A stretch of 64,000 bases of DNA from Amphiscolops sp. MND2022 (GCA_964187785.1 OZ076411.1:12214001-12278000), one strand, 5' to 3'; shown: positions 40,465-49,279, counted from the first letter of the stretch. Notes: a model not told the origin generated them from the sequence alone. Translations and numbers: made by a program.

Positions 40465-41437
40465 TGATACGCGGCAATGAACTCAATCAGGCCTCAATTC
40501 GATTTTTAGAAAAGTCTACACATTGACTTAGTTGGTACAAAAACCGATTGTATCGTCAGAAAACTGCCATCCACCGGTTACATCTAACGAACATCAGACA
40601 TACTGAAAAAATTATTTAACCCGTATCAGATGTGTGAGTGAATTCATATACTAGTTTGCTTCATGTGAACAAAAGCGGCAAGAAACAAGCCGGGAACAAT
40701 CATTTTGCATCTACAATGGGAAACTATTGTGAACTTTTTCACCAGATTTACAGGCCTGGAAAAATCCCGAAGGCGTTACAATGACTCGAAAACCTACCTG
40801 GGAACATAGAAAACTCAAGGTTTTTCTCTCAATATCTGAAAAAGTTCCTTCATGAAAAGATCCGATGAAAAATTCCATAGTGCCGAGGTAATTCAATGGG
40901 TAAACGGGAACCGCAAGGAACCCGATCAAGCACTTGTGGTCCAAGGCGTTCGATTTGAAGCAAAGTGACCATTTACCCAAGACGTTCGGCCTGGAAAAAT
41001 TAGGCGACTGTTAGGGCCCCAACTCCTTCTGATCGTAGCTGGGTTTTCGGATTATTGAACATTAAATAATGTCAATACTTTATTTTCAGATGTGTGTTGA
41101 GAAAGTGATTCAGTAAAGTGAAGATAAAAATAAGAGGTACATGAACTAGCTGTCTGGTATAGTGGGTGGCTGTAAATAGGTCGAATTTTTCTGGTCGAAA
41201 GGACAGAGGTCGAACCTTTTGATGGAATTGCAGGGATCGAATGGAATGCGGTCGAATTTTATCGTATTTGTTGTATGGCTCGGTCGCTTCGCTCCCTTCG
41301 CCAGGTAGCAACATTGAGGCATGGCCATATGGCACGTCGCTCCGCTTCGCTTCGCTCCTGCATTCAGGGCACTAGGGGTATGTGAACATATATAGCCTAA
41401 TTGTTGTGATAAACTTATTAAATAGTTTCCGGTTGTG

Positions 41438-42250
41438 ATGCCTCCAAAAAGACAGACGAAGCAGACAAACAGCAAAAGTGCAACTACTGACCTCCTACCC
41501 TGTGCAAAAGAAACGTGTGGAAAATGTGATGTGGAGGTAGTTGACGGGGATTCAGCCCTGGCCTGTGAACAATGCCTCAGGTACTTCCACGGGGTCTGCT
41601 TGGGCGTAAACAATGCTGTGGTGACGGCAATGGGGAATCTCCCTGGGTGCTACTGGTTCTGTGAAGAGTGTGATGGACCTCAGCGGGCTCGTGTGGATCT
41701 GCCAAAGGAAACTGAAAAGCTAAGTAAAATGGTTTCTCATTTGAATACATTAGTAGCAAAGATTCCTCCTCTTGAGATACCAAAAACTCCTGATTCATCG
41801 ACTGCTAAAATAATGAATGTAATGACCGACGATTATAAATGTCAAGTACGTATCTCTGGCATTGAAGAAACTCCTGAAAACACTGCATCAAAACAGATGA
41901 TTAAAGATCAAGTTCAAATTGAAGAAGTCCTTGAGAAAATTGACTGTTCCTTCCCGATCAAAGGTGTAAGACGAATGGGCCGCTACTACCCAGGACGCAA
42001 ACGGAAAGTTTTAATAACATTCCAATCACCATGGGAAGCACGGCTGGTCATTGCCAAAGCGATTGAAAATAACCTCTTCCAGGAACACAAAGTACTGATT
42101 ACTCCTGGGCTTTCCAAAGAAGACGCATTGCGCGAGAAAACGCTCCTGCAAAAGAGATATGATATGATACAGAATGGCACTGATTCAAAAACTTTGAAAA
42201 TTAGAAAACTTAAACTCTACCAAAATGGCAAGGAGGTTCAAATTGAATGA
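41438..42250 (+). CDS. LINE-A ORF1 (PHD finger plus RRM-like domain), CR1/L2 group
   Basis: CGKC...CEQCLRYFHGVC...WFCEEC PHD; QVRISGIEE, RRMGRY, RKVLITF; intact; ATG at 41438. Confidence 0.9.
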   Translation: MPPKRQTKQTNSKSATTDLLPCAKETCGKCDVEVVDGDSALACEQCLRYFHGVCLGVNNAVVTAMGNLPGCYWFCEECDGPQRARVDLPKETEKLSKMVSHLNTLVAKIPPLEIPKTPDSSTAKIMNVMTDDYKCQVRISGIEETPENTASKQMIKDQVQIEEVLEKIDCSFPIKGVRRMGRYYPGRKRKVLITFQSPWEARLVIAKAIENNLFQEHKVLITPGLSKEDALREKTLLQKRYDMIQNGTDSKTLKIRKLKLYQNGKEVQIE

Positions 42251-42259
42251 CTCACAAAG

Positions 42260-45070
42260 TTGGAAGAAAAAGTTTCTAAAATTCTCTACTTGAATGTGCA
42301 AGGTCTCTTATCGTTCCAAAAATGTATTGATTTACAAAAGCTTTATCTGACTGGTTCATATGATTTGATGCTGTTATGCGAAACCTGGTTTGACGAAAAT
42401 GTTGAATCGATTATATTTCCTAATGACATCCCAACAGTCCTGAATCGAGCCGATCGGAAGGATGGTTCACATGGTGGTGTGGTGATATGTTCGAATACTT
42501 TGGATACATCTCCGGTCAAAACAAATTTCGACTTCGGTTGCGCTGTTATTTTCCAGAACTGCTTGGTGATAGTTATTTATAATCCTCCCCTGACCAGCAA
42601 ATACCGGATAATGGATAAACATCTCCTCAATTTTATTAAATCGGTTATTTGCAAAGCTTTTTGGTCGGTCGAGAAAAATATCTTAGTGTTAGGCGATTTC
42701 AATATCCCTTCGATTAATTGGGCACTCTTTCCCGCTCAAATTCCCGAGGAGTACTCCGAAGTTTTCAATTTCTTCATTCACAATGGCTTTGATCAATTAA
42801 TTCATCAAACGACCCATGACGGAGGCAATATTCTAGACCTTTGTTTTGCAAACTTTGACATTCAATCAATCTCTGTGTCGGGAAAAAATTTCCAGTCTGA
42901 CCACTTCGGAATAACTATTATTTTAGAAACTTTTCATCTTAAAAAGTGGGAAATGCCTCAATCCAACTCAACCTTCTCCCTTACTCCAGATGCGGTGGAA
43001 AACATAAAGCTTGACCTATCTGACAATATATTTTCAATGGTACAGCCAAATTCCGAATCTACTTATAGCCAGAATTGGTTCGATAATTTCGACGAAATTC
43101 TGAAGAAACACATGAGAAAGAAACGTCAAAAGCGTTTGAGTCTACCGTTCTATTACACTTCGCATTCGATTCACCTTTATAATCAATTGAAAACCCTTGC
43201 GTCTTCAACGAAAAATTACAACATATCAAAATTTATGTCAGTGAAAAAAGACCTCTTGGAGTCTATTGAGTTGGATATCCATTGTTTTGTTAACCATTTT
43301 GTTAGTAACAACACGAGAATGCATGACTGTTATAATCTAGTCAGATCTTTCAAAAATTCTTCGTCCTATCCCTCAAAAATGACATGGGAGAAAAAGAATT
43401 TCTCTGGTAAACCTGATATTGCCAATGCTTTCAACGACTTTTTCTTTTGCCAATATCAAGAATGTTCAACTATCAAAAATTTCAACAACTTCGATGAATT
43501 AGAATTGAATGATGTTGAAATCACTCTAGATGAAGTGTACTCAGTTCTAAACTGTTGCACGAATGGAACTGGACCGGATGGTCTTTCTGGGTTTCTACTG
43601 CGACAGATTTCCAACGAATTTAGCATTCATTTTCTTAAATTGGCAGAACACATTCTCAGTACATCAATTTTCCCTGCAAACTGGAAAACAACTTTCATTA
43701 GACCAATGCACAAAAAGAAATGTAAAACGGTAATCGAAAATTACAGACCTGTAGCATCTTTATCCCGTCTTTCAATTTGTTTTGAACGGCTCCTTTTTAA
43801 AAAACTTTATCCCCACTGCTCAAAAAAGATATCCCATTTACAGCATGGGTTCATGAAAAGCAAATCGATACAATCCCAATTGTTAATTCACTTAGATTAC
43901 ATATACAACAACCTCGACAGAGGAGATGAAGTTTTCACAGTTTATCTTGATTTCAGCAAAGCGTTTGATCGTGTTGATCATGAGATTTTATTGAAAAAGG
44001 TTGCCAGTTTTGGGATTGGTGGCAATATACTCAAACTCTTGAAAAGTTATCTCGAAGATCGTGAACAACGAGTTAAAATTGACGACTGTCTCTCAACTGC
44101 CCTTCCAATCAAAAGTGGTGTCCCCCAAGGCTCGGTTATTGGACCTTTATTATTTTTAATCTTCATTAATGATTTGCCTGGTGTTTGTGTCGACTCAATA
44201 ATGTTACTCTTTGCAGACGATTCGAAAATCTCAAATGCTGATCCCATTGAACTCCAGAATGATCTTATAAGGATTTATAACTGGGCGAAAGCAAATAAAA
44301 TGGAATTCAATAACACGAAAACTGAACTACTATGGTTTACTCTTCATCGCTATAAAATTTCTGATAGACGTGTATTGGTCTTTGATTCTAAAGATATTGA
44401 GTTTTCTACGGTCCCTATTAAAGATTTGGGTATCAATTTTACGTCTGATTTGAAATGGTCAGCCCACATCGATGTTCGTATTAGAAAAGCTTTTTCACGA
44501 TTCATGATGTTAAAGCGGTCCTTACCGACTACCTTACCGGCTAATGTAAAATCACAAGTTTACAAACTTTATATCCTACCAATAATCACCTATGGATCAG
44601 TCCTATGGTTTCCCAACAAGACTGATTTATCGAAATTAGAAGTCTTTCAAAATAAAGTTATTCGTTGGTTTGGACTTATAGATGATTATAAGGATCGGTT
44701 ATTAGCCCTAAATTTGCTTCCCTTTTCTCTGCTGTTTCAGTTGAACGACCTCCTATTCCTACATCAATGTATCGTGAACGATTCTCCGATATGTTCAGGA
44801 CTGCTCTACAAAGAATCTCTCCGCCATTATGACACCCGATTTTCATCACGAAAACTTCTCTTTAAAAAGAAAACAAGACTGAAGTCCACTGACAGCTTTT
44901 TCATAAACAGAGTTGTTAATCTAGCTAATTTCGTATCATCGAAATTCGAGATTGACTTCTTTGACACGACCTCATTTAAGCCTAAACTGAAAAATATTTT
45001 CCGAAACTACCTTAAATATGGCTATGATAAATCGGATTGTAGAAGGTTTTTGAAGTGCTATTGCTGTTGA
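42260..45070 (+). CDS. LINE-A ORF2 (APE endonuclease + reverse transcriptase), intact, CR1-like
   Basis: 936 codons without a stop: NVQGL, LCETW, LGDFNIP, ILDLC, SDH; NYRPVASL, YLDFSKAFDRVDH, GVPQGSVIGPLLFLIFINDL, LFADD, KDLG. Confidence 0.95.
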   Translation: MEEKVSKILYLNVQGLLSFQKCIDLQKLYLTGSYDLMLLCETWFDENVESIIFPNDIPTVLNRADRKDGSHGGVVICSNTLDTSPVKTNFDFGCAVIFQNCLVIVIYNPPLTSKYRIMDKHLLNFIKSVICKAFWSVEKNILVLGDFNIPSINWALFPAQIPEEYSEVFNFFIHNGFDQLIHQTTHDGGNILDLCFANFDIQSISVSGKNFQSDHFGITIILETFHLKKWEMPQSNSTFSLTPDAVENIKLDLSDNIFSMVQPNSESTYSQNWFDNFDEILKKHMRKKRQKRLSLPFYYTSHSIHLYNQLKTLASSTKNYNISKFMSVKKDLLESIELDIHCFVNHFVSNNTRMHDCYNLVRSFKNSSSYPSKMTWEKKNFSGKPDIANAFNDFFFCQYQECSTIKNFNNFDELELNDVEITLDEVYSVLNCCTNGTGPDGLSGFLLRQISNEFSIHFLKLAEHILSTSIFPANWKTTFIRPMHKKKCKTVIENYRPVASLSRLSICFERLLFKKLYPHCSKKISHLQHGFMKSKSIQSQLLIHLDYIYNNLDRGDEVFTVYLDFSKAFDRVDHEILLKKVASFGIGGNILKLLKSYLEDREQRVKIDDCLSTALPIKSGVPQGSVIGPLLFLIFINDLPGVCVDSIMLLFADDSKISNADPIELQNDLIRIYNWAKANKMEFNNTKTELLWFTLHRYKISDRRVLVFDSKDIEFSTVPIKDLGINFTSDLKWSAHIDVRIRKAFSRFMMLKRSLPTTLPANVKSQVYKLYILPIITYGSVLWFPNKTDLSKLEVFQNKVIRWFGLIDDYKDRLLALNLLPFSLLFQLNDLLFLHQCIVNDSPICSGLLYKESLRHYDTRFSSRKLLFKKKTRLKSTDSFFINRVVNLANFVSSKFEIDFFDTTSFKPKLKNIFRNYLKYGYDKSDCRRFLKCYCC

Positions 45071-45514
45071 TTTTTGTTTCTTATATTTTCAATCATAAAT
45101 AATCAGGCTGTTTAATATCTACAGAAAAGTAGAATTTAAGTCTTTTACTACTATCTGACTACGTTATGAAAATTTCGATCCGAGTTGTTTCGATTTCTTT
45201 CAAAAAATTTGAAATGTCGACCTGAGGACTATCTCTGATTTTCGATCCTGTTCTTTCGACCTACTTCCGCCCACCCTGGTATAGTCTGAGTTGGTTGAAC
45301 TTCGATAGTCCTCTGACCTTCATCGGTCTCTACCACCCCCGCTCGACGAGAGTCTCCGAGAGTTGTTGCTGGTCGATGGCGAACCACTGTGCTTGACCGT
45401 CTGTCGTGTCTCTGATGCTATGTTTAAAAAATTGAACAATAGAACCAGTACAGAAGTTAAGTACAATGCAGTCAGTTCAAATAAAATATAGCACCAGAGG
45501 GGACCCTCCAAAGG

Positions 45515-48500
45515 TTATTATTTCTAAACGGGGGAGGACCCTCCAAACACAAGGGCATCAACAAAAAACTATGTCTGCCAGACGTTCGCTACTTATTTTG
45601 ATTTTAATTTTTAATATCAATCTTTTAGTCTCATTTTCACCGATAGATTCATAATTGCGAGGTAATAGCTTCGTTTTTAGTAGATGATTCAGTAAGACAG
45701 TTCCACGATATTTTAGTGATTGTCGGCTAACTTGCGTTCGTGCTTCAGGTACAAAAAACATATTGGAAGAAACACAGTAAAAACAAGGTAATTTTTGTGG
45801 ATAAATACGCTCTTGATTTTATGCAGTTGACTTTCTCTACTAGAACGCACGGCGAATTTTAATAGTTCAAATACGTATAGATCAAAAACATTCATAATTT
45901 CGCTTCTTTTGAACAATTCATCCGATGGATGTCGTCTGTTTTTAAAATATGTAATACGGAGGATTTTTTTCTGAACAAGAAAAATATCATTCAGTACACT
46001 CTTCCTCGTGCACCCATATATCAAGAGTCCGTATTGGATAATTGGTTTCATGTATGTTTTATAATATCGTATCACTACCGAACTACTGGTGAAATGCCTT
46101 AGACGGTTAATAATGGATACATGTTTGGCTAATTTATTCAGTACTCGTTTGACGTGGAAACAATAAGTTAAATTTTTATCAAGTAAGATACCCAGATATT
46201 TAACGTATTCAGTACATGTTATTTCAGTATTTTTCAATACTATGCTTTCATCTTTGCAGTTTAAAAAATGGACCAACTCAGTTTTAGGAATATTTTGACT
46301 AAGTTTATTCATAGCCATCCATCCAGGAATGTGTTCAACTTCATCTTGTAATGTAGATGTCTCATTTTTGGGTCTCGCGTAAACGCAATTAGCATCATCC
46401 GCAAAGAGAAACGGAATAATGTTTTTACACGAGTTCGGGAAATCATTTACATAAATTATAAAGAGCAGTGGGCCAAGAATAGATCCTTGAGGAACGCCGC
46501 AGTCAATAAGTAATGGTTTTGAGACTTTACCCTTAATTGAAACACATTGACTTCGTTTACTTAGATATGATGTGAACCAATCCAAGCAAACCCCTCTGAC
46601 ACCGTATGCTTCGAGTTTATACAAGAGAAATTCATGATTTATTGTATCGAAGGCTTTTTGTAAATCAAGCAAAATACAAGAAATATCGATGTTAGAATTA
46701 TTCCTAATCATTTCTGTAATATCGGAAACAGCGTGGATGGGGCTCAGTTTTGACCTGAATCCAAATTGTCTTGGGTATAATAGCTTATTTTTATCCATGA
46801 AATTATATAATCGTTCATGCACAACACGTTCAAATATTTTGCTCAATACTGATAAAACAGATATGGGTCTGTAATTTTCACGTATAGATTTTTTGCCGGA
46901 TTTGTATATCGGTACCACTCTCGCAGCTTTCAAAACCTGAGGAAATGTTCCACTTTTTAGCGATTCATTCACGAGATGAGTTACTTTTTAACTATTACAT
47001 CGTGACTCACTTTTAGTATCTCTGCAGTCAGTCCATCTAGACCAGGAGATTTATGGTTCTTAAGATTTTTTATAAACCTCGAAATCTCAGTGCCATCAGC
47101 TGGATAAAAAAATAGTGATTTTTCATTAGTTTTTATACCTTGAGTCGTGAATGGGACATTATCAATTGAATCAGCTAAGGTTTTACTGATGGAAACAAAT
47201 TTTTCATTGAACGATTCGGCCACATCAATATCATCCGTAATCAATTCATTTTTATCATTCTTGACAACAAAGTTGGAATTTTTTGTTGCTTTACCAGTGA
47301 TTTTGTTTAGTTCTTTGTAGAAACATTTAGGATTATCGATAAGCCCATTCAGACGTGAATCGTAGTATTCGCGCTTGCTTTTACGAAGCTGCTGGTGCAC
47401 ATTATTTCTAGCTCTTGTGTAGCGTAGCTTGTTCTGATTGGTTTTACAGCGCTTGTATCTGTGGAAACTACAATTTCTTCGAATTAAGGCCTTTTTTACT
47501 TCCTTAGTGAACCAAGGTCTTACGGCATCTTGGTGTTCTGATTGTTTTTCAACTGTGAAAGCAATAACTGCTTCCGATATTGCATTGGCAAACGATTCAG
47601 TAGATGCATTGATGTCCTGTCCTAAATCTACAAGTTCCAGGCAATGTCTTAAGTAATTTAAACAGAGATTTGTTGCATTACCGTCCCGGAGAAACGGTCT
47701 ATCCTTAATAAAATGTTGAGAACGAATGGATTTAGATTTACTTATATTCAAATCAACGTAGGCTGCAAAATGGTCTGCAATATACGTCTTGATAACTCCA
47801 AATTCCAGAGGTCTTTGGTAGTCATTATGGATTATATGATCGATTAACGATTCTGAGTCAAGCGTTACACGGGTTGGTTCTTCGATTCCTTGGGCGCAAC
47901 CATGAATTTCCAACAATTTCAGATACCTATCTGCAACAGGGTTGCATTCCAAGAGGTCAATATTAATATCGCCTATTAGATAGTAGTTCTTAATTTGACT
48001 AAGAGACTCAAGAAGTAACTCAAACTGATCCAAGAAATCCTGTTTATTTACGGAAGGCGAGTTGTATAAGCATACAACGGTAAATTTTTCCTTATTCCTA
48101 GCGGTACAATTGACTCCAGTATAGTTTAGATCAGGAATAGAATCTTTCTGTATGTTAAGCTCCAAAAGTTCAAATGCCAGCGATTCATGGACATATATTG
48201 CAACACATTCATTTCTTGTTGAACCAGGATCAAATTCCATAGGTGCATTGGATTCTAGTGCGTAGGTATTTTTGTCTGAGGATTCAGTCATCCATGTTTC
48301 GGACAAGCAAATAATAGACGGTTTGTTTTCACGAAAGGTATCTATATGCGTTTCTAGTTCTTCAAAATTGTAGTCGATAGACCTTATGTTCAAATGAAAA
48401 ATCCATTCGTACTCAACACTTTGTTCTTTTAGGTTGTTTTTATGTTTAGGCTTTGATTTTTTACGTTTGAATTTGTAAGCTAGAGGGCCCCCTAACAAAA

Positions 48501-49279
48501 TGTAGACAACTTTTGCATACAGAGTAGACAAAATCAGGACCCCATTCATATAATTTGAAGAGGCTATCAAAGACAGTTTTTGTATCATTTTGTTGATACA
48601 CCACAATTTTTCGTTAATCATGTTAACAGAAGTTACATCTTGTCTTTGCCTCAATGCCTTAGCCAACCTTGCTCGTAGTAGCGTGAGATCATCGTTGATT
48701 TAAATTTTATTTTCACTATCTTTGAGCATCTTTTTGTTGGTCATCAGCCCGATTTTGGTCTGTCTCCTTACATATTTTGCAATGATAGGGCGCCCTTGGC
48801 CAGGCTTCACATTTCTGCTGGGAACCCTATGGCAGATGCTGATGTCCGCTCTGGATACCTGACATCCCGCCTTTTCTGCCACATCGATCACAGCCTGATA
48901 CACGTCCTCATTTGGTGCCTCCTCCACCCCAAATATGCGGACATTGTCCCGCCTTCCATATTGCTGGTTTGAATCGGCATTGAAAAGACTGGACAACTTT
49001 CCGTTGATTTGAGGCTTTTCTGCAATTTTGGCAAGTTTGGACTGCAAGTTGGCCAACTCAGCTGCTGCACAGAAGCCACATAGGAAGGGGCGGTCCATGA
49101 AACCCTTGTGGATCTTTTTCGGGAGCCATGTGGGGACCCAGGATTGGCATCCCTTTCCCTTGTCGGGACCCTTGCCAGTACATTCGATTAGGTGGGTGGA
49201 CCCCTCTTCGTCTGATTGAGAGCCAGTTCTAGTAGTCGGCATCGCGTCTATTTAATAAGTTTATCACAACAATTAGGCT
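45515..49279 (-). mobile_element. LINE-B, full-length L2/Crack/Daphne-type, lightly decayed
   Basis: ORF1 48700-49242 (QQYGRRDNVRIFGV, DISICHRV, RPIIAKYVRR) frameshifted into 46981-48666 (APE: HLNIRS, CLSETW, IGDINID, LIDH, ADH); RT 45713-46972 (NYRPISVL, LDLQKAFDTI, GVPQGSILGPLLF, FADD); (TAA)-like tail near 45515. Confidence 0.92.

Follow-up and report, generated by a model that had tools for sequence, protein, structure and literature searches.

Long interspersed nuclear elements (LINEs) lose their upstream promoters at each round of copying, and the known solutions to this problem are internal promoters and 5' ribozymes. Self-cleaving ribozymes of the hepatitis delta virus (HDV) type, for instance, are found at the 5' ends of R2, RTE, and L1Tc (PMC3185411, PMC4035085). 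Here we describe two LINEs, LINE-A and LINE-B, that lie in a 64,000-nucleotide stretch of the Amphiscolops sp. MND2022 genome (contig C3:12,214,001-12,278,000; hereafter, the window) and that both begin with the complete 32-nt exon of the host's spliced leader (SL) RNA. These elements share a problem with the LINEs that carry HDV-like ribozymes, namely how to obtain a defined 5' end from a cotranscript without a promoter of their own; however, a ribozyme-generated end is uncapped, whereas the leader would be capped. We detected no ribozyme at the 5' ends of the window LINEs, and a comparison of the whole window with Rfam yielded no family at or above its gathering score. We consider it very probable that the RNAs of these LINEs were trans-spliced to the host SL and then retroposed together with the leader.

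Several described systems come close to this arrangement. DNA-encoded leaders mark the retrogenes of dinoflagellates (DinoSL relics; PMC6050394, PMC5585692), and the loci described here are like those relics in that a trans-spliced RNA has been retroposed without introns and the DNA copy opens directly with the leader, which tags the retroposition. They differ in being mainly autonomous LINEs of many families, in belonging to a bilaterian, in carrying a leader that is complete rather than clipped, and in showing no stacked relics. Among flatworms, SL exons or partial leaders fused to long terminal repeat (LTR) elements and LINEs have been reported in S. mansoni (PMC5832876) and across 24 parasitic species (PMC12582326); the authors tentatively read them, in one line, as integrated trans-spliced retrotransposon RNAs and dropped the loci as noise or possible misassemblies (PMC5832876, PMC12582326). 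Unlike those loci, the ones described here have boundaries fixed by empty sites, lack an SL-less progenitor, occur in long and short forms, and come from the Xenacoelomorpha. In Hydra, the SL is present on ~30% of transposable element (TE) Iso-Seq reads (PMC12220107), and TE RNAs are likewise substrates of SL trans-splicing there; the evidence comes from RNA in Hydra and from DNA here. LINEs are also associated with SLs in the cases of NeSL-1 of Caenorhabditis elegans and SLACS, CZAR, and CRE of trypanosomatids, but these are inserted into SL genes and flanked by split SL sequence, whereas the window elements are dispersed, carry the whole exon at their 5' end only, and have no SL promoter, intron, or 5S gene around them. 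What is new here is the proof from empty sites, the breadth of the phenomenon (two deep lineages with many families), the lack of a leader-less progenitor, the long and short forms defined by an acceptor, and the phylum.

The 32-mer shared by two LINEs is the exon of the host SL RNA

An initial annotation of the window had pointed to one 32-mer at the 5' ends of two LINEs on opposite strands, 12 and 5 nt before their open reading frame 1 (ORF1) start codons. Our search found exact matches at both positions, 41394-41425 (+) and 49248-49279 (-), and no further match in the window at up to three mismatches, where the number expected by chance is 0. The two elements are convergent, and the spacings to the ORF1 ATG proved correct: 12 nt (TTTCCGGTTGTG) in LINE-A and 5 nt (ACGCG) in LINE-B. 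Both elements code for an APE endonuclease and a reverse transcriptase (RT) recognized by Pfam. The RTs are only 33% identical and the ORF1 products essentially unrelated (a PHD finger versus no known domain), in agreement with the different ORF1 types and divergent ORF2s that had been described, and the flanks of the two 32-mers differ as claimed. An assembly artifact is ruled out for LINE-B, whose junction of flank, SL, and ACGCG recurs unchanged in an independent ENA assembly.

Across the 1.07-Gb genome, the 32-mer has 2,243 matches at up to two mismatches, and its 3' 20 nt are followed by a GTAAGT donor in 1,207 exact copies. The SL RNA genes occupy positions 16.2 to 16.4 Mb of contig C1 as long tandem arrays with a 904-bp period, each unit of which contains the 32-mer, a consensus donor, a strong hairpin, a single-stranded AAUUUUUGA (Sm-type site), and, ~190 bp downstream, a 5S rRNA gene (117 bits). 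In the predicted fold (minimum free energy, -27.7 kcal/mol; z = -3.2), the 3' half of the exon pairs with the intron, the donor is paired in stem-loop 1, as it is in other SL RNAs, and a second hairpin follows; AAUUUUUGA stays single-stranded after the strong hairpin. No Rfam family matches the SL RNA gene. The expectation that the 32-mer would be found followed by GT and an Sm site in tandemly arrayed SL RNA genes was thus borne out at ~1,200 loci, which combine GTAAGT, the hairpin, the Sm-type site, and linkage to 5S.

At positions 2 to 32, the 32-mer is identical to the published SL of the acoel Symsagittifera roscoffensis, a leader reported in 2022 to be carried by 30.2% of that species' genes (PMC9911081). 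In the literature, we found this leader sequence only in that paper and its preprint, the main text and supplement of which do not mention LINEs. Judged by its genes and their predicted fold, then, the 32-mer is the exon of the host SL RNA, a real leader and one that was already known. From the genomic relics, the leader measures 32 nt to the true 5' end of the SL RNA, against one base less in the published version.

Empty sites place the 5' end of LINE-A at the leader

LINE-A lies within a dispersed repeat whose left and right halves (41164-41391 and 45155-45277) align contiguously to unoccupied copies (L090, L064, L049, L079, L041, and L058), so that the sequence before and after insertion can be compared directly. 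Empty sites in seven other copies of the repeat read gtgaacatat followed immediately by ctgactacg. The filled site consists of the left half plus "at," the leader, the element through TTTTACTAC, "tat," and the right half; that is, the insertion made a 3-nt duplication (tat) and left 2 extra nt at the 5' junction. This comparison puts the 5' boundary 0 to 2 nt upstream of SL base 1, and on that basis the window insertion is the 3,758-bp interval 41394-45151 (+), starting at leader base 1 within 2 nt. A second LINE-A insertion (L099), in another part of the repeat, has an empty site that gives the same 5' boundary. The initial annotation had named a longer shared repeat or a target site as other possible sources of the 32-mer; with differing flanks and with empty sites that lack the SL, the 32-mer belongs to neither.

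Within this insertion, the leader relic (41394-41425) is an exact and complete copy of the SL RNA gene exon and of the published SL. It is followed by the element's own 5' untranslated region (UTR), TTTCCGGTTGTG (41426-41437), part of the TTTC[A/C]G motif treated below. ORF1 (41438-42250) encodes 270 amino acids with a PHD finger (Pfam, 6e-05) and ends in TGA; ORF2 (42251-45070), with APE and RT domains (Exo_endo_phos_2, 3e-09; RVT_1, 1e-29), is intact, running uninterrupted over 936 amino acids in the ORF1 frame after one stop codon. The 3' UTR (45071-45151) ends in a (TAC)2 tail, as judged against a 5'-truncated copy in L085 and ten full-length copies with (TAC)1-3 tails.

The first 400 nt are 100% identical in at least 40 copies, which marks the family as very young, and an identical ORF1 protein occurs on at least 24 contigs of another assembly. 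The leader precedes all 30 LINE-A loci that we fetched from the genome (exact in 21, altered at a single base in 1, and missing 1 to 10 nt in 8), and the flanks of the 30 are all different. Loci with a truncated or mutated DNA leader include L062, L069, L084 to L086, and L088. Ten further full-length copies, from the other assembly, also start with the SL at different sites and have 3,755-bp bodies with (TAC)1-3 tails. All 40 sampled loci therefore begin with the SL, either complete or truncated within it, and the family displays the hallmarks of retroposition: unrelated sites, two empty sites, leader truncations of 1 to 10 nt, (TAC)1-3 tails, and target-site duplications of 0 to 4 nt. Only one 5'-complete LINE-A without the leader exists in the genome, identified as a 5' UTR that is not preceded by the leader's final G.

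These boundaries bear on a first alternative, in which the LINEs are specific for SL RNA genes or fragments of them, as NeSL-1, SLACS, CZAR, and CRE are, and the 32-mer is simply target DNA. Elements with such a specificity do exist in the SL-5S array of this genome, and the long ones encode an RT. Neither the window elements nor the 40 LINE-A loci have an SL promoter or 5S gene upstream, however, and every flank is different. The exon is whole, stops precisely where the donor would begin, and is not followed by intron sequence. The endonuclease of the window elements is of the APE rather than the restriction-enzyme-like (REL) type, and the empty sites hold no SL sequence at all. For the window elements the alternative is refuted, and we give it almost no credence overall.

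Some further observations concern the repeat and the copies themselves. The host repeat is very abundant, dispersed, and ~350 bp long, with copies also in L041, L049, L058, L061, L064, L079, and L090, and the second LINE-A insertion (L065/L099) occupies a different copy of it, at a position ~90 bp away; the finding of two insertions in one repeat may reflect the repeat's abundance or a target preference. One LINE-A copy (L093:2957-7310) is 4,354 bp long instead of the usual 3,755 bp and so holds an internal insertion of ~600 bp.

LINE-B copies differ by a segment ending in a splice acceptor

The LINE-B family comes in two forms. In 43 copies, the SL is followed by TTTCAG and then by ACGCG and the ATG (long form), whereas in 10 copies, including the one in the window, the SL is joined directly to ACGCG-ATG (short form). 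A second family shows the same relationship, with leader, 27 nt ending in TTTTCAG, and ATTAACTG in L031 and L036 but leader and ATTAACTG alone in L056 and L057. As read from these junctions, the short form is the product expected if a long-form transcript were trans-spliced at its TTTCAG acceptor, which amounts to a splice signature.

The window copy is a complete insertion of 3,871 bp at 45409-49279 (-), with its 3' boundary placed where at least 40 genomic copies stop matching and with no poly(A) or microsatellite tail. Its 5' terminus is the complete SL exon (49248-49279), an exact match seen also in the independent assembly, followed by the short-form 5' UTR ACGCG (49243-49247). ORF1 (48700-49242) encodes 180 amino acids without a Pfam domain and ends in TAA; its product is 46 to 50% identical to the ORF1 of the L031/L056 family. 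The endonuclease part of ORF2 (46981-48666; weak Pfam match, Exo_endo_phos, 1.5e-03) is in the ORF1 frame, and the RT part (45713-46972; RVT_1, 5e-34) is displaced by a frameshift near 46984-46987. The initial annotation had called LINE-B decayed, which has to be corrected: it is 98 to 99% identical to at least 40 other genomic copies, with a single frameshift in ORF2, and is therefore neither old nor heavily decayed. Twenty-four proteins make up the ORF1 cluster; the 15 listed each come from one contig only.

In both window LINEs, ORF1 and ORF2 share a reading frame with one stop codon between them, TGA followed by C in LINE-A (42248-42250, +) and TAA in LINE-B (48700-48702, -). This layout suggests that ORF2 may be expressed by read-through of the stop codon or by reinitiation.

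Had the leader been added anew at each insertion from SL-less master copies with an outron, such copies should be present, and the initial annotation had proposed looking for ones with a T-rich AG acceptor in place of the SL. None of that kind was found in the genome. The candidates for a 5'-complete copy without the leader number one for LINE-A and zero for LINE-B, and we therefore rule out SL-less masters. Since, with the single LINE-A exception, only leader-bearing copies are 5' complete, the SL-bearing copies themselves are the progenitors.

Leader-headed loci are dispersed through the genome

Outside the SL RNA genes, we counted 642 dispersed exact copies of the leader's 3' 20 nt in which the next base is not G, and these occur on all large contigs. 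We sampled 30 such loci, all on C1. In 22 of them the whole 32-nt exon is present, and in the others it is shortened only within its first ~9 nt. Two local tandem duplicates apart, the upstream flanks show no relationship to one another, and the downstream sequences fall into ~20 clusters. Thirteen loci are homologous to the ORF1 or endonuclease of LINE-A (26 to 100% protein identity) and ten to those of LINE-B (24 to 96%); one further locus has an APE domain, so that at least 24 of the 30 are headed LINEs. These LINEs form two deep lineages, with ORF1 identity down to 26%. The other six loci comprise a retrocopy of eIF2A, a BEL/Pao gag, and four that were given no class. The prediction that other LINE copies or retrocopies would start with the 32-mer thus finds its answer in hundreds of LINE copies and one host-gene retrocopy.

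The retrocopy (L046:3-1540, -) contains an intronless frame of more than 400 amino acids for host eIF2A (Pfam, 2.4e-51) directly after the leader. From this structure, it is a retrocopy of a trans-spliced host mRNA, and because it starts with the SL, SL-bearing mRNAs in general are retroposed in this genome. Its leader has an internal 6-nt duplication (TAATTG). At L052:3-1540 (-), a partial leader (the last ~24 nt) lies ~490 nt upstream of a BEL/Pao-type gag ORF (DUF1759, 1e-36), and LTR elements may be acquiring the leader as well. Two pairs of leader-capped loci, L038/L039 (C1:12.532-12.534 Mb) and L056/L057 (C1:45.344-45.346 Mb), are 1.8 to 2.0 kb apart and have a common upstream flank; by that shared flank they are local tandem duplications rather than independent insertions.

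The position of the junction argues against a second alternative, in which the RT, on reaching the 5' end of the LINE RNA, jumped to a new template, either the SL RNA or the free SL exon released by the first step of trans-splicing. In favor of this, SL RNA is plentiful and LINE RTs are known to change templates at the 5' ends of RNAs; the U6-L1 chimeras of mammals are products of such switching. Chimeras of this kind, however, join at variable positions and carry the 3' part of the small RNA, whereas here the junction falls at the last base of the exon in 30 of 30 sampled loci, with no SL intron sequence, and always after the final AG in the 70 loci inspected (30 dispersed plus 40 LINE-A), none of which shows SL intron or scattered junctions. 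The LINE side is fixed too, right behind the canonical TTTCAG in the short forms, and a host mRNA retrocopy has the same structure. We regard template switching as very improbable, although marginally less so than insertion into SL genes.

The sequence TTTC[A/C]G stands directly behind the leader in 305 of the 642 dispersed copies, although not in the eIF2A retrocopy. None of the first 100 of the 305 sites listed is in the SL gene array, all of them being dispersed, and the motif therefore belongs to the elements. An SL gene variant with TTTCAG in its exon was considered as a source and ruled out on the same count, all 100 listed sites of SL plus TTTC[A/C]G lying outside the array.

Some loci also carry sequence complementary to the leader. 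TTTAATAAGT, the perfect complement of leader bases 20 to 29, occurs 10 to 45 nt after the leader in L031, L036, L050, and L060, and in several families it is placed immediately before an internal (C/T)TTTCAG acceptor. In L037, the leader is followed directly by its own inverted copy, perfect over 13 nt and extending to 18 nt if one mismatch is allowed. Control windows reach at most 6 to 9 nt of such complementarity. A hairpin with the leader or recruitment of the SL ribonucleoprotein (RNP) is a possible role for TTTAATAAGT. As a general feature of these elements, complementarity to the leader was rejected, as it is found in only 3 to 4 of the ~20 clusters and in neither window element.

The SL-5S array harbors insertions of another kind. 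In L011 to L030 (C1, 16.22 to 16.31 Mb), many SL genes are split after leader base 18 or 14 (for example, L012:2401-3032, L013:1-1500, L021:2401-3032, and L022:1-1500). The inserts are of two sizes, ~2.0 and ~4.9 kb; their 5' ends are of at least five kinds, but their common 3' end, ATTCTTTAAA, adjoins leader base 1 of an intact SL gene, which makes the leader's first 14 to 18 nt the target duplication. The long inserts end in an RT (RVT_1, 1.7e-11; zf-RVT). These are SL-gene-specific retrotransposons like NeSL and SLACS, a type apparently undescribed for acoels.

Trans-splicing as the source of the leader

The proposal that the LINE RNAs were trans-spliced and then retrotransposed, first made in the initial annotation, draws support from the SL genes, the junctions at the exon end, the empty sites, and the long and short forms, all of them features of genomic sequence. 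Under this mechanism, LINE transcripts would be substrates of the host's SL trans-splicing: the LINE RNA would have an acceptor at its start onto which the spliceosome splices the 32-nt leader with its cap, and full-length target-primed reverse transcription would copy the leader into DNA. Since the leader is copied along, a complete new insertion would begin with SL base 1, and the anatomy of the sequences demonstrates as much.

How an SL-bearing copy is expressed again is a separate question, and we think it somewhat probable that this happens by read-through transcription followed by renewed trans-splicing. An own 5' UTR of only 5 to 12 nt leaves no room for a promoter upstream of ORF1, and transcription would then come by read-through from neighboring promoters. 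Resplicing at the terminal AG of the DNA-encoded leader would regenerate the same 5' end, and resplicing at the TTTCAG just behind the leader would give a short form such as the window LINE-B. The main argument for resplicing is the constancy of the leader, which is the same at all 32 positions in ~18 LINE clusters whose ORF1s are only 26 to 50% identical and whose adjacent UTRs differ. Such identity across diverged families fits renewal from the host SL pool.

The same constancy could, however, be the work of purifying selection on an inherited leader, and this leads to the most serious alternative. Many LINEs, such as jockey, I, and L1, have internal promoters that initiate at base 1 of the element. 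The leader might accordingly have been captured once or a few times by ancestral LINEs and passed on as a 5' UTR, with transcription initiated at SL base 1 by a promoter inside the element (the leader or the beginning of ORF1), and with trans-splicing as an occasional refresh rather than a step of every cycle. Such a history would agree with the 5' limit of the copies, which is SL base 1 throughout, with nothing added upstream of it. TTTC[A/C]G and the short UTR are kept among diverged families, which indicates that selection can hold short 5' sequences, and long LINE-B copies, in which an unused TTTCAG acceptor is kept, outnumber short ones by 43 to 10. A promoter would not need every base, though, whereas 32 of 32 positions are maintained; inspection by eye revealed no fit to the initiator (Inr) or downstream promoter element (DPE) consensus at the expected positions, and the conserved sequence of the host SL gene lies upstream of the exon. 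The short forms, moreover, show that RNAs from leader-bearing copies do get trans-spliced. On balance, we judge an inherited leader with its own promoter unlikely, while granting it far more weight than either template switching or SL-gene targeting.

Several further points weigh against our preferred explanation, trans-splicing followed by retroposition. Of the five public runs that contain the stretch, none is registered as RNA, and all have the character of DNA contigs; in a protein-indexed collection the LINE-A ORF1 is on no contig shorter than 5 kb, that is, on none that resembles a transcript. Because the leader is encoded in the DNA, reads that join SL and LINE in RNA would not on their own prove fresh trans-splicing. 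Stacked relict leaders (leader end, then leader from base 3) have 0 matches in the genome, the pyrimidine tract at the 3' end of the leader itself is weak, comparison of the flanks of the window LINE-B reveals no recognizable target-site duplication, and the family census of dispersed copies covers one chromosome.

A more specific version of resplicing treats the leader relic as a portable, self-regenerating 3' splice site, with read-through transcripts being trans-spliced at the relic's AG. In the relic, no AG precedes the terminal one, and 25 nt upstream of the latter is a CTAAT that resembles a branch point. CTAAT would serve as the branch point and the TTTCAG behind the leader, where present, as a landing site for U2AF, and the subset of elements with TTTAATAAGT beside an internal acceptor could recruit the SL RNP by base pairing. 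An element built in this way would have no need of a promoter: whichever transcribed locus it sat in could express it, and each time its leader would be restored, capped and perfect. We offer this version tentatively, with rather less than even confidence; if it is true, SL trans-splicing would be a host feature that actively licenses the proliferation of LINEs.

Implications

Set beside internal promoters and 5' ribozymes, what we describe looks like a third solution to promoter loss, documented at genome scale, in which trans-splicing supplies the cap and nearly the whole 5' UTR and the leader is carried in the DNA. There are practical consequences for this species, since gene annotation that relies on the SL, and any tally of "trans-spliced genes," will be misled by the leaders encoded at more than 600 places in the genome, while the relics also tag retrocopies of host genes. 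If the leader is indeed recycled, SL trans-splicing would constitute a vulnerability, in that retroelements without a promoter could be expressed wherever they sit in transcribed DNA, and this would bear on why trans-splicing arises and on what it costs.

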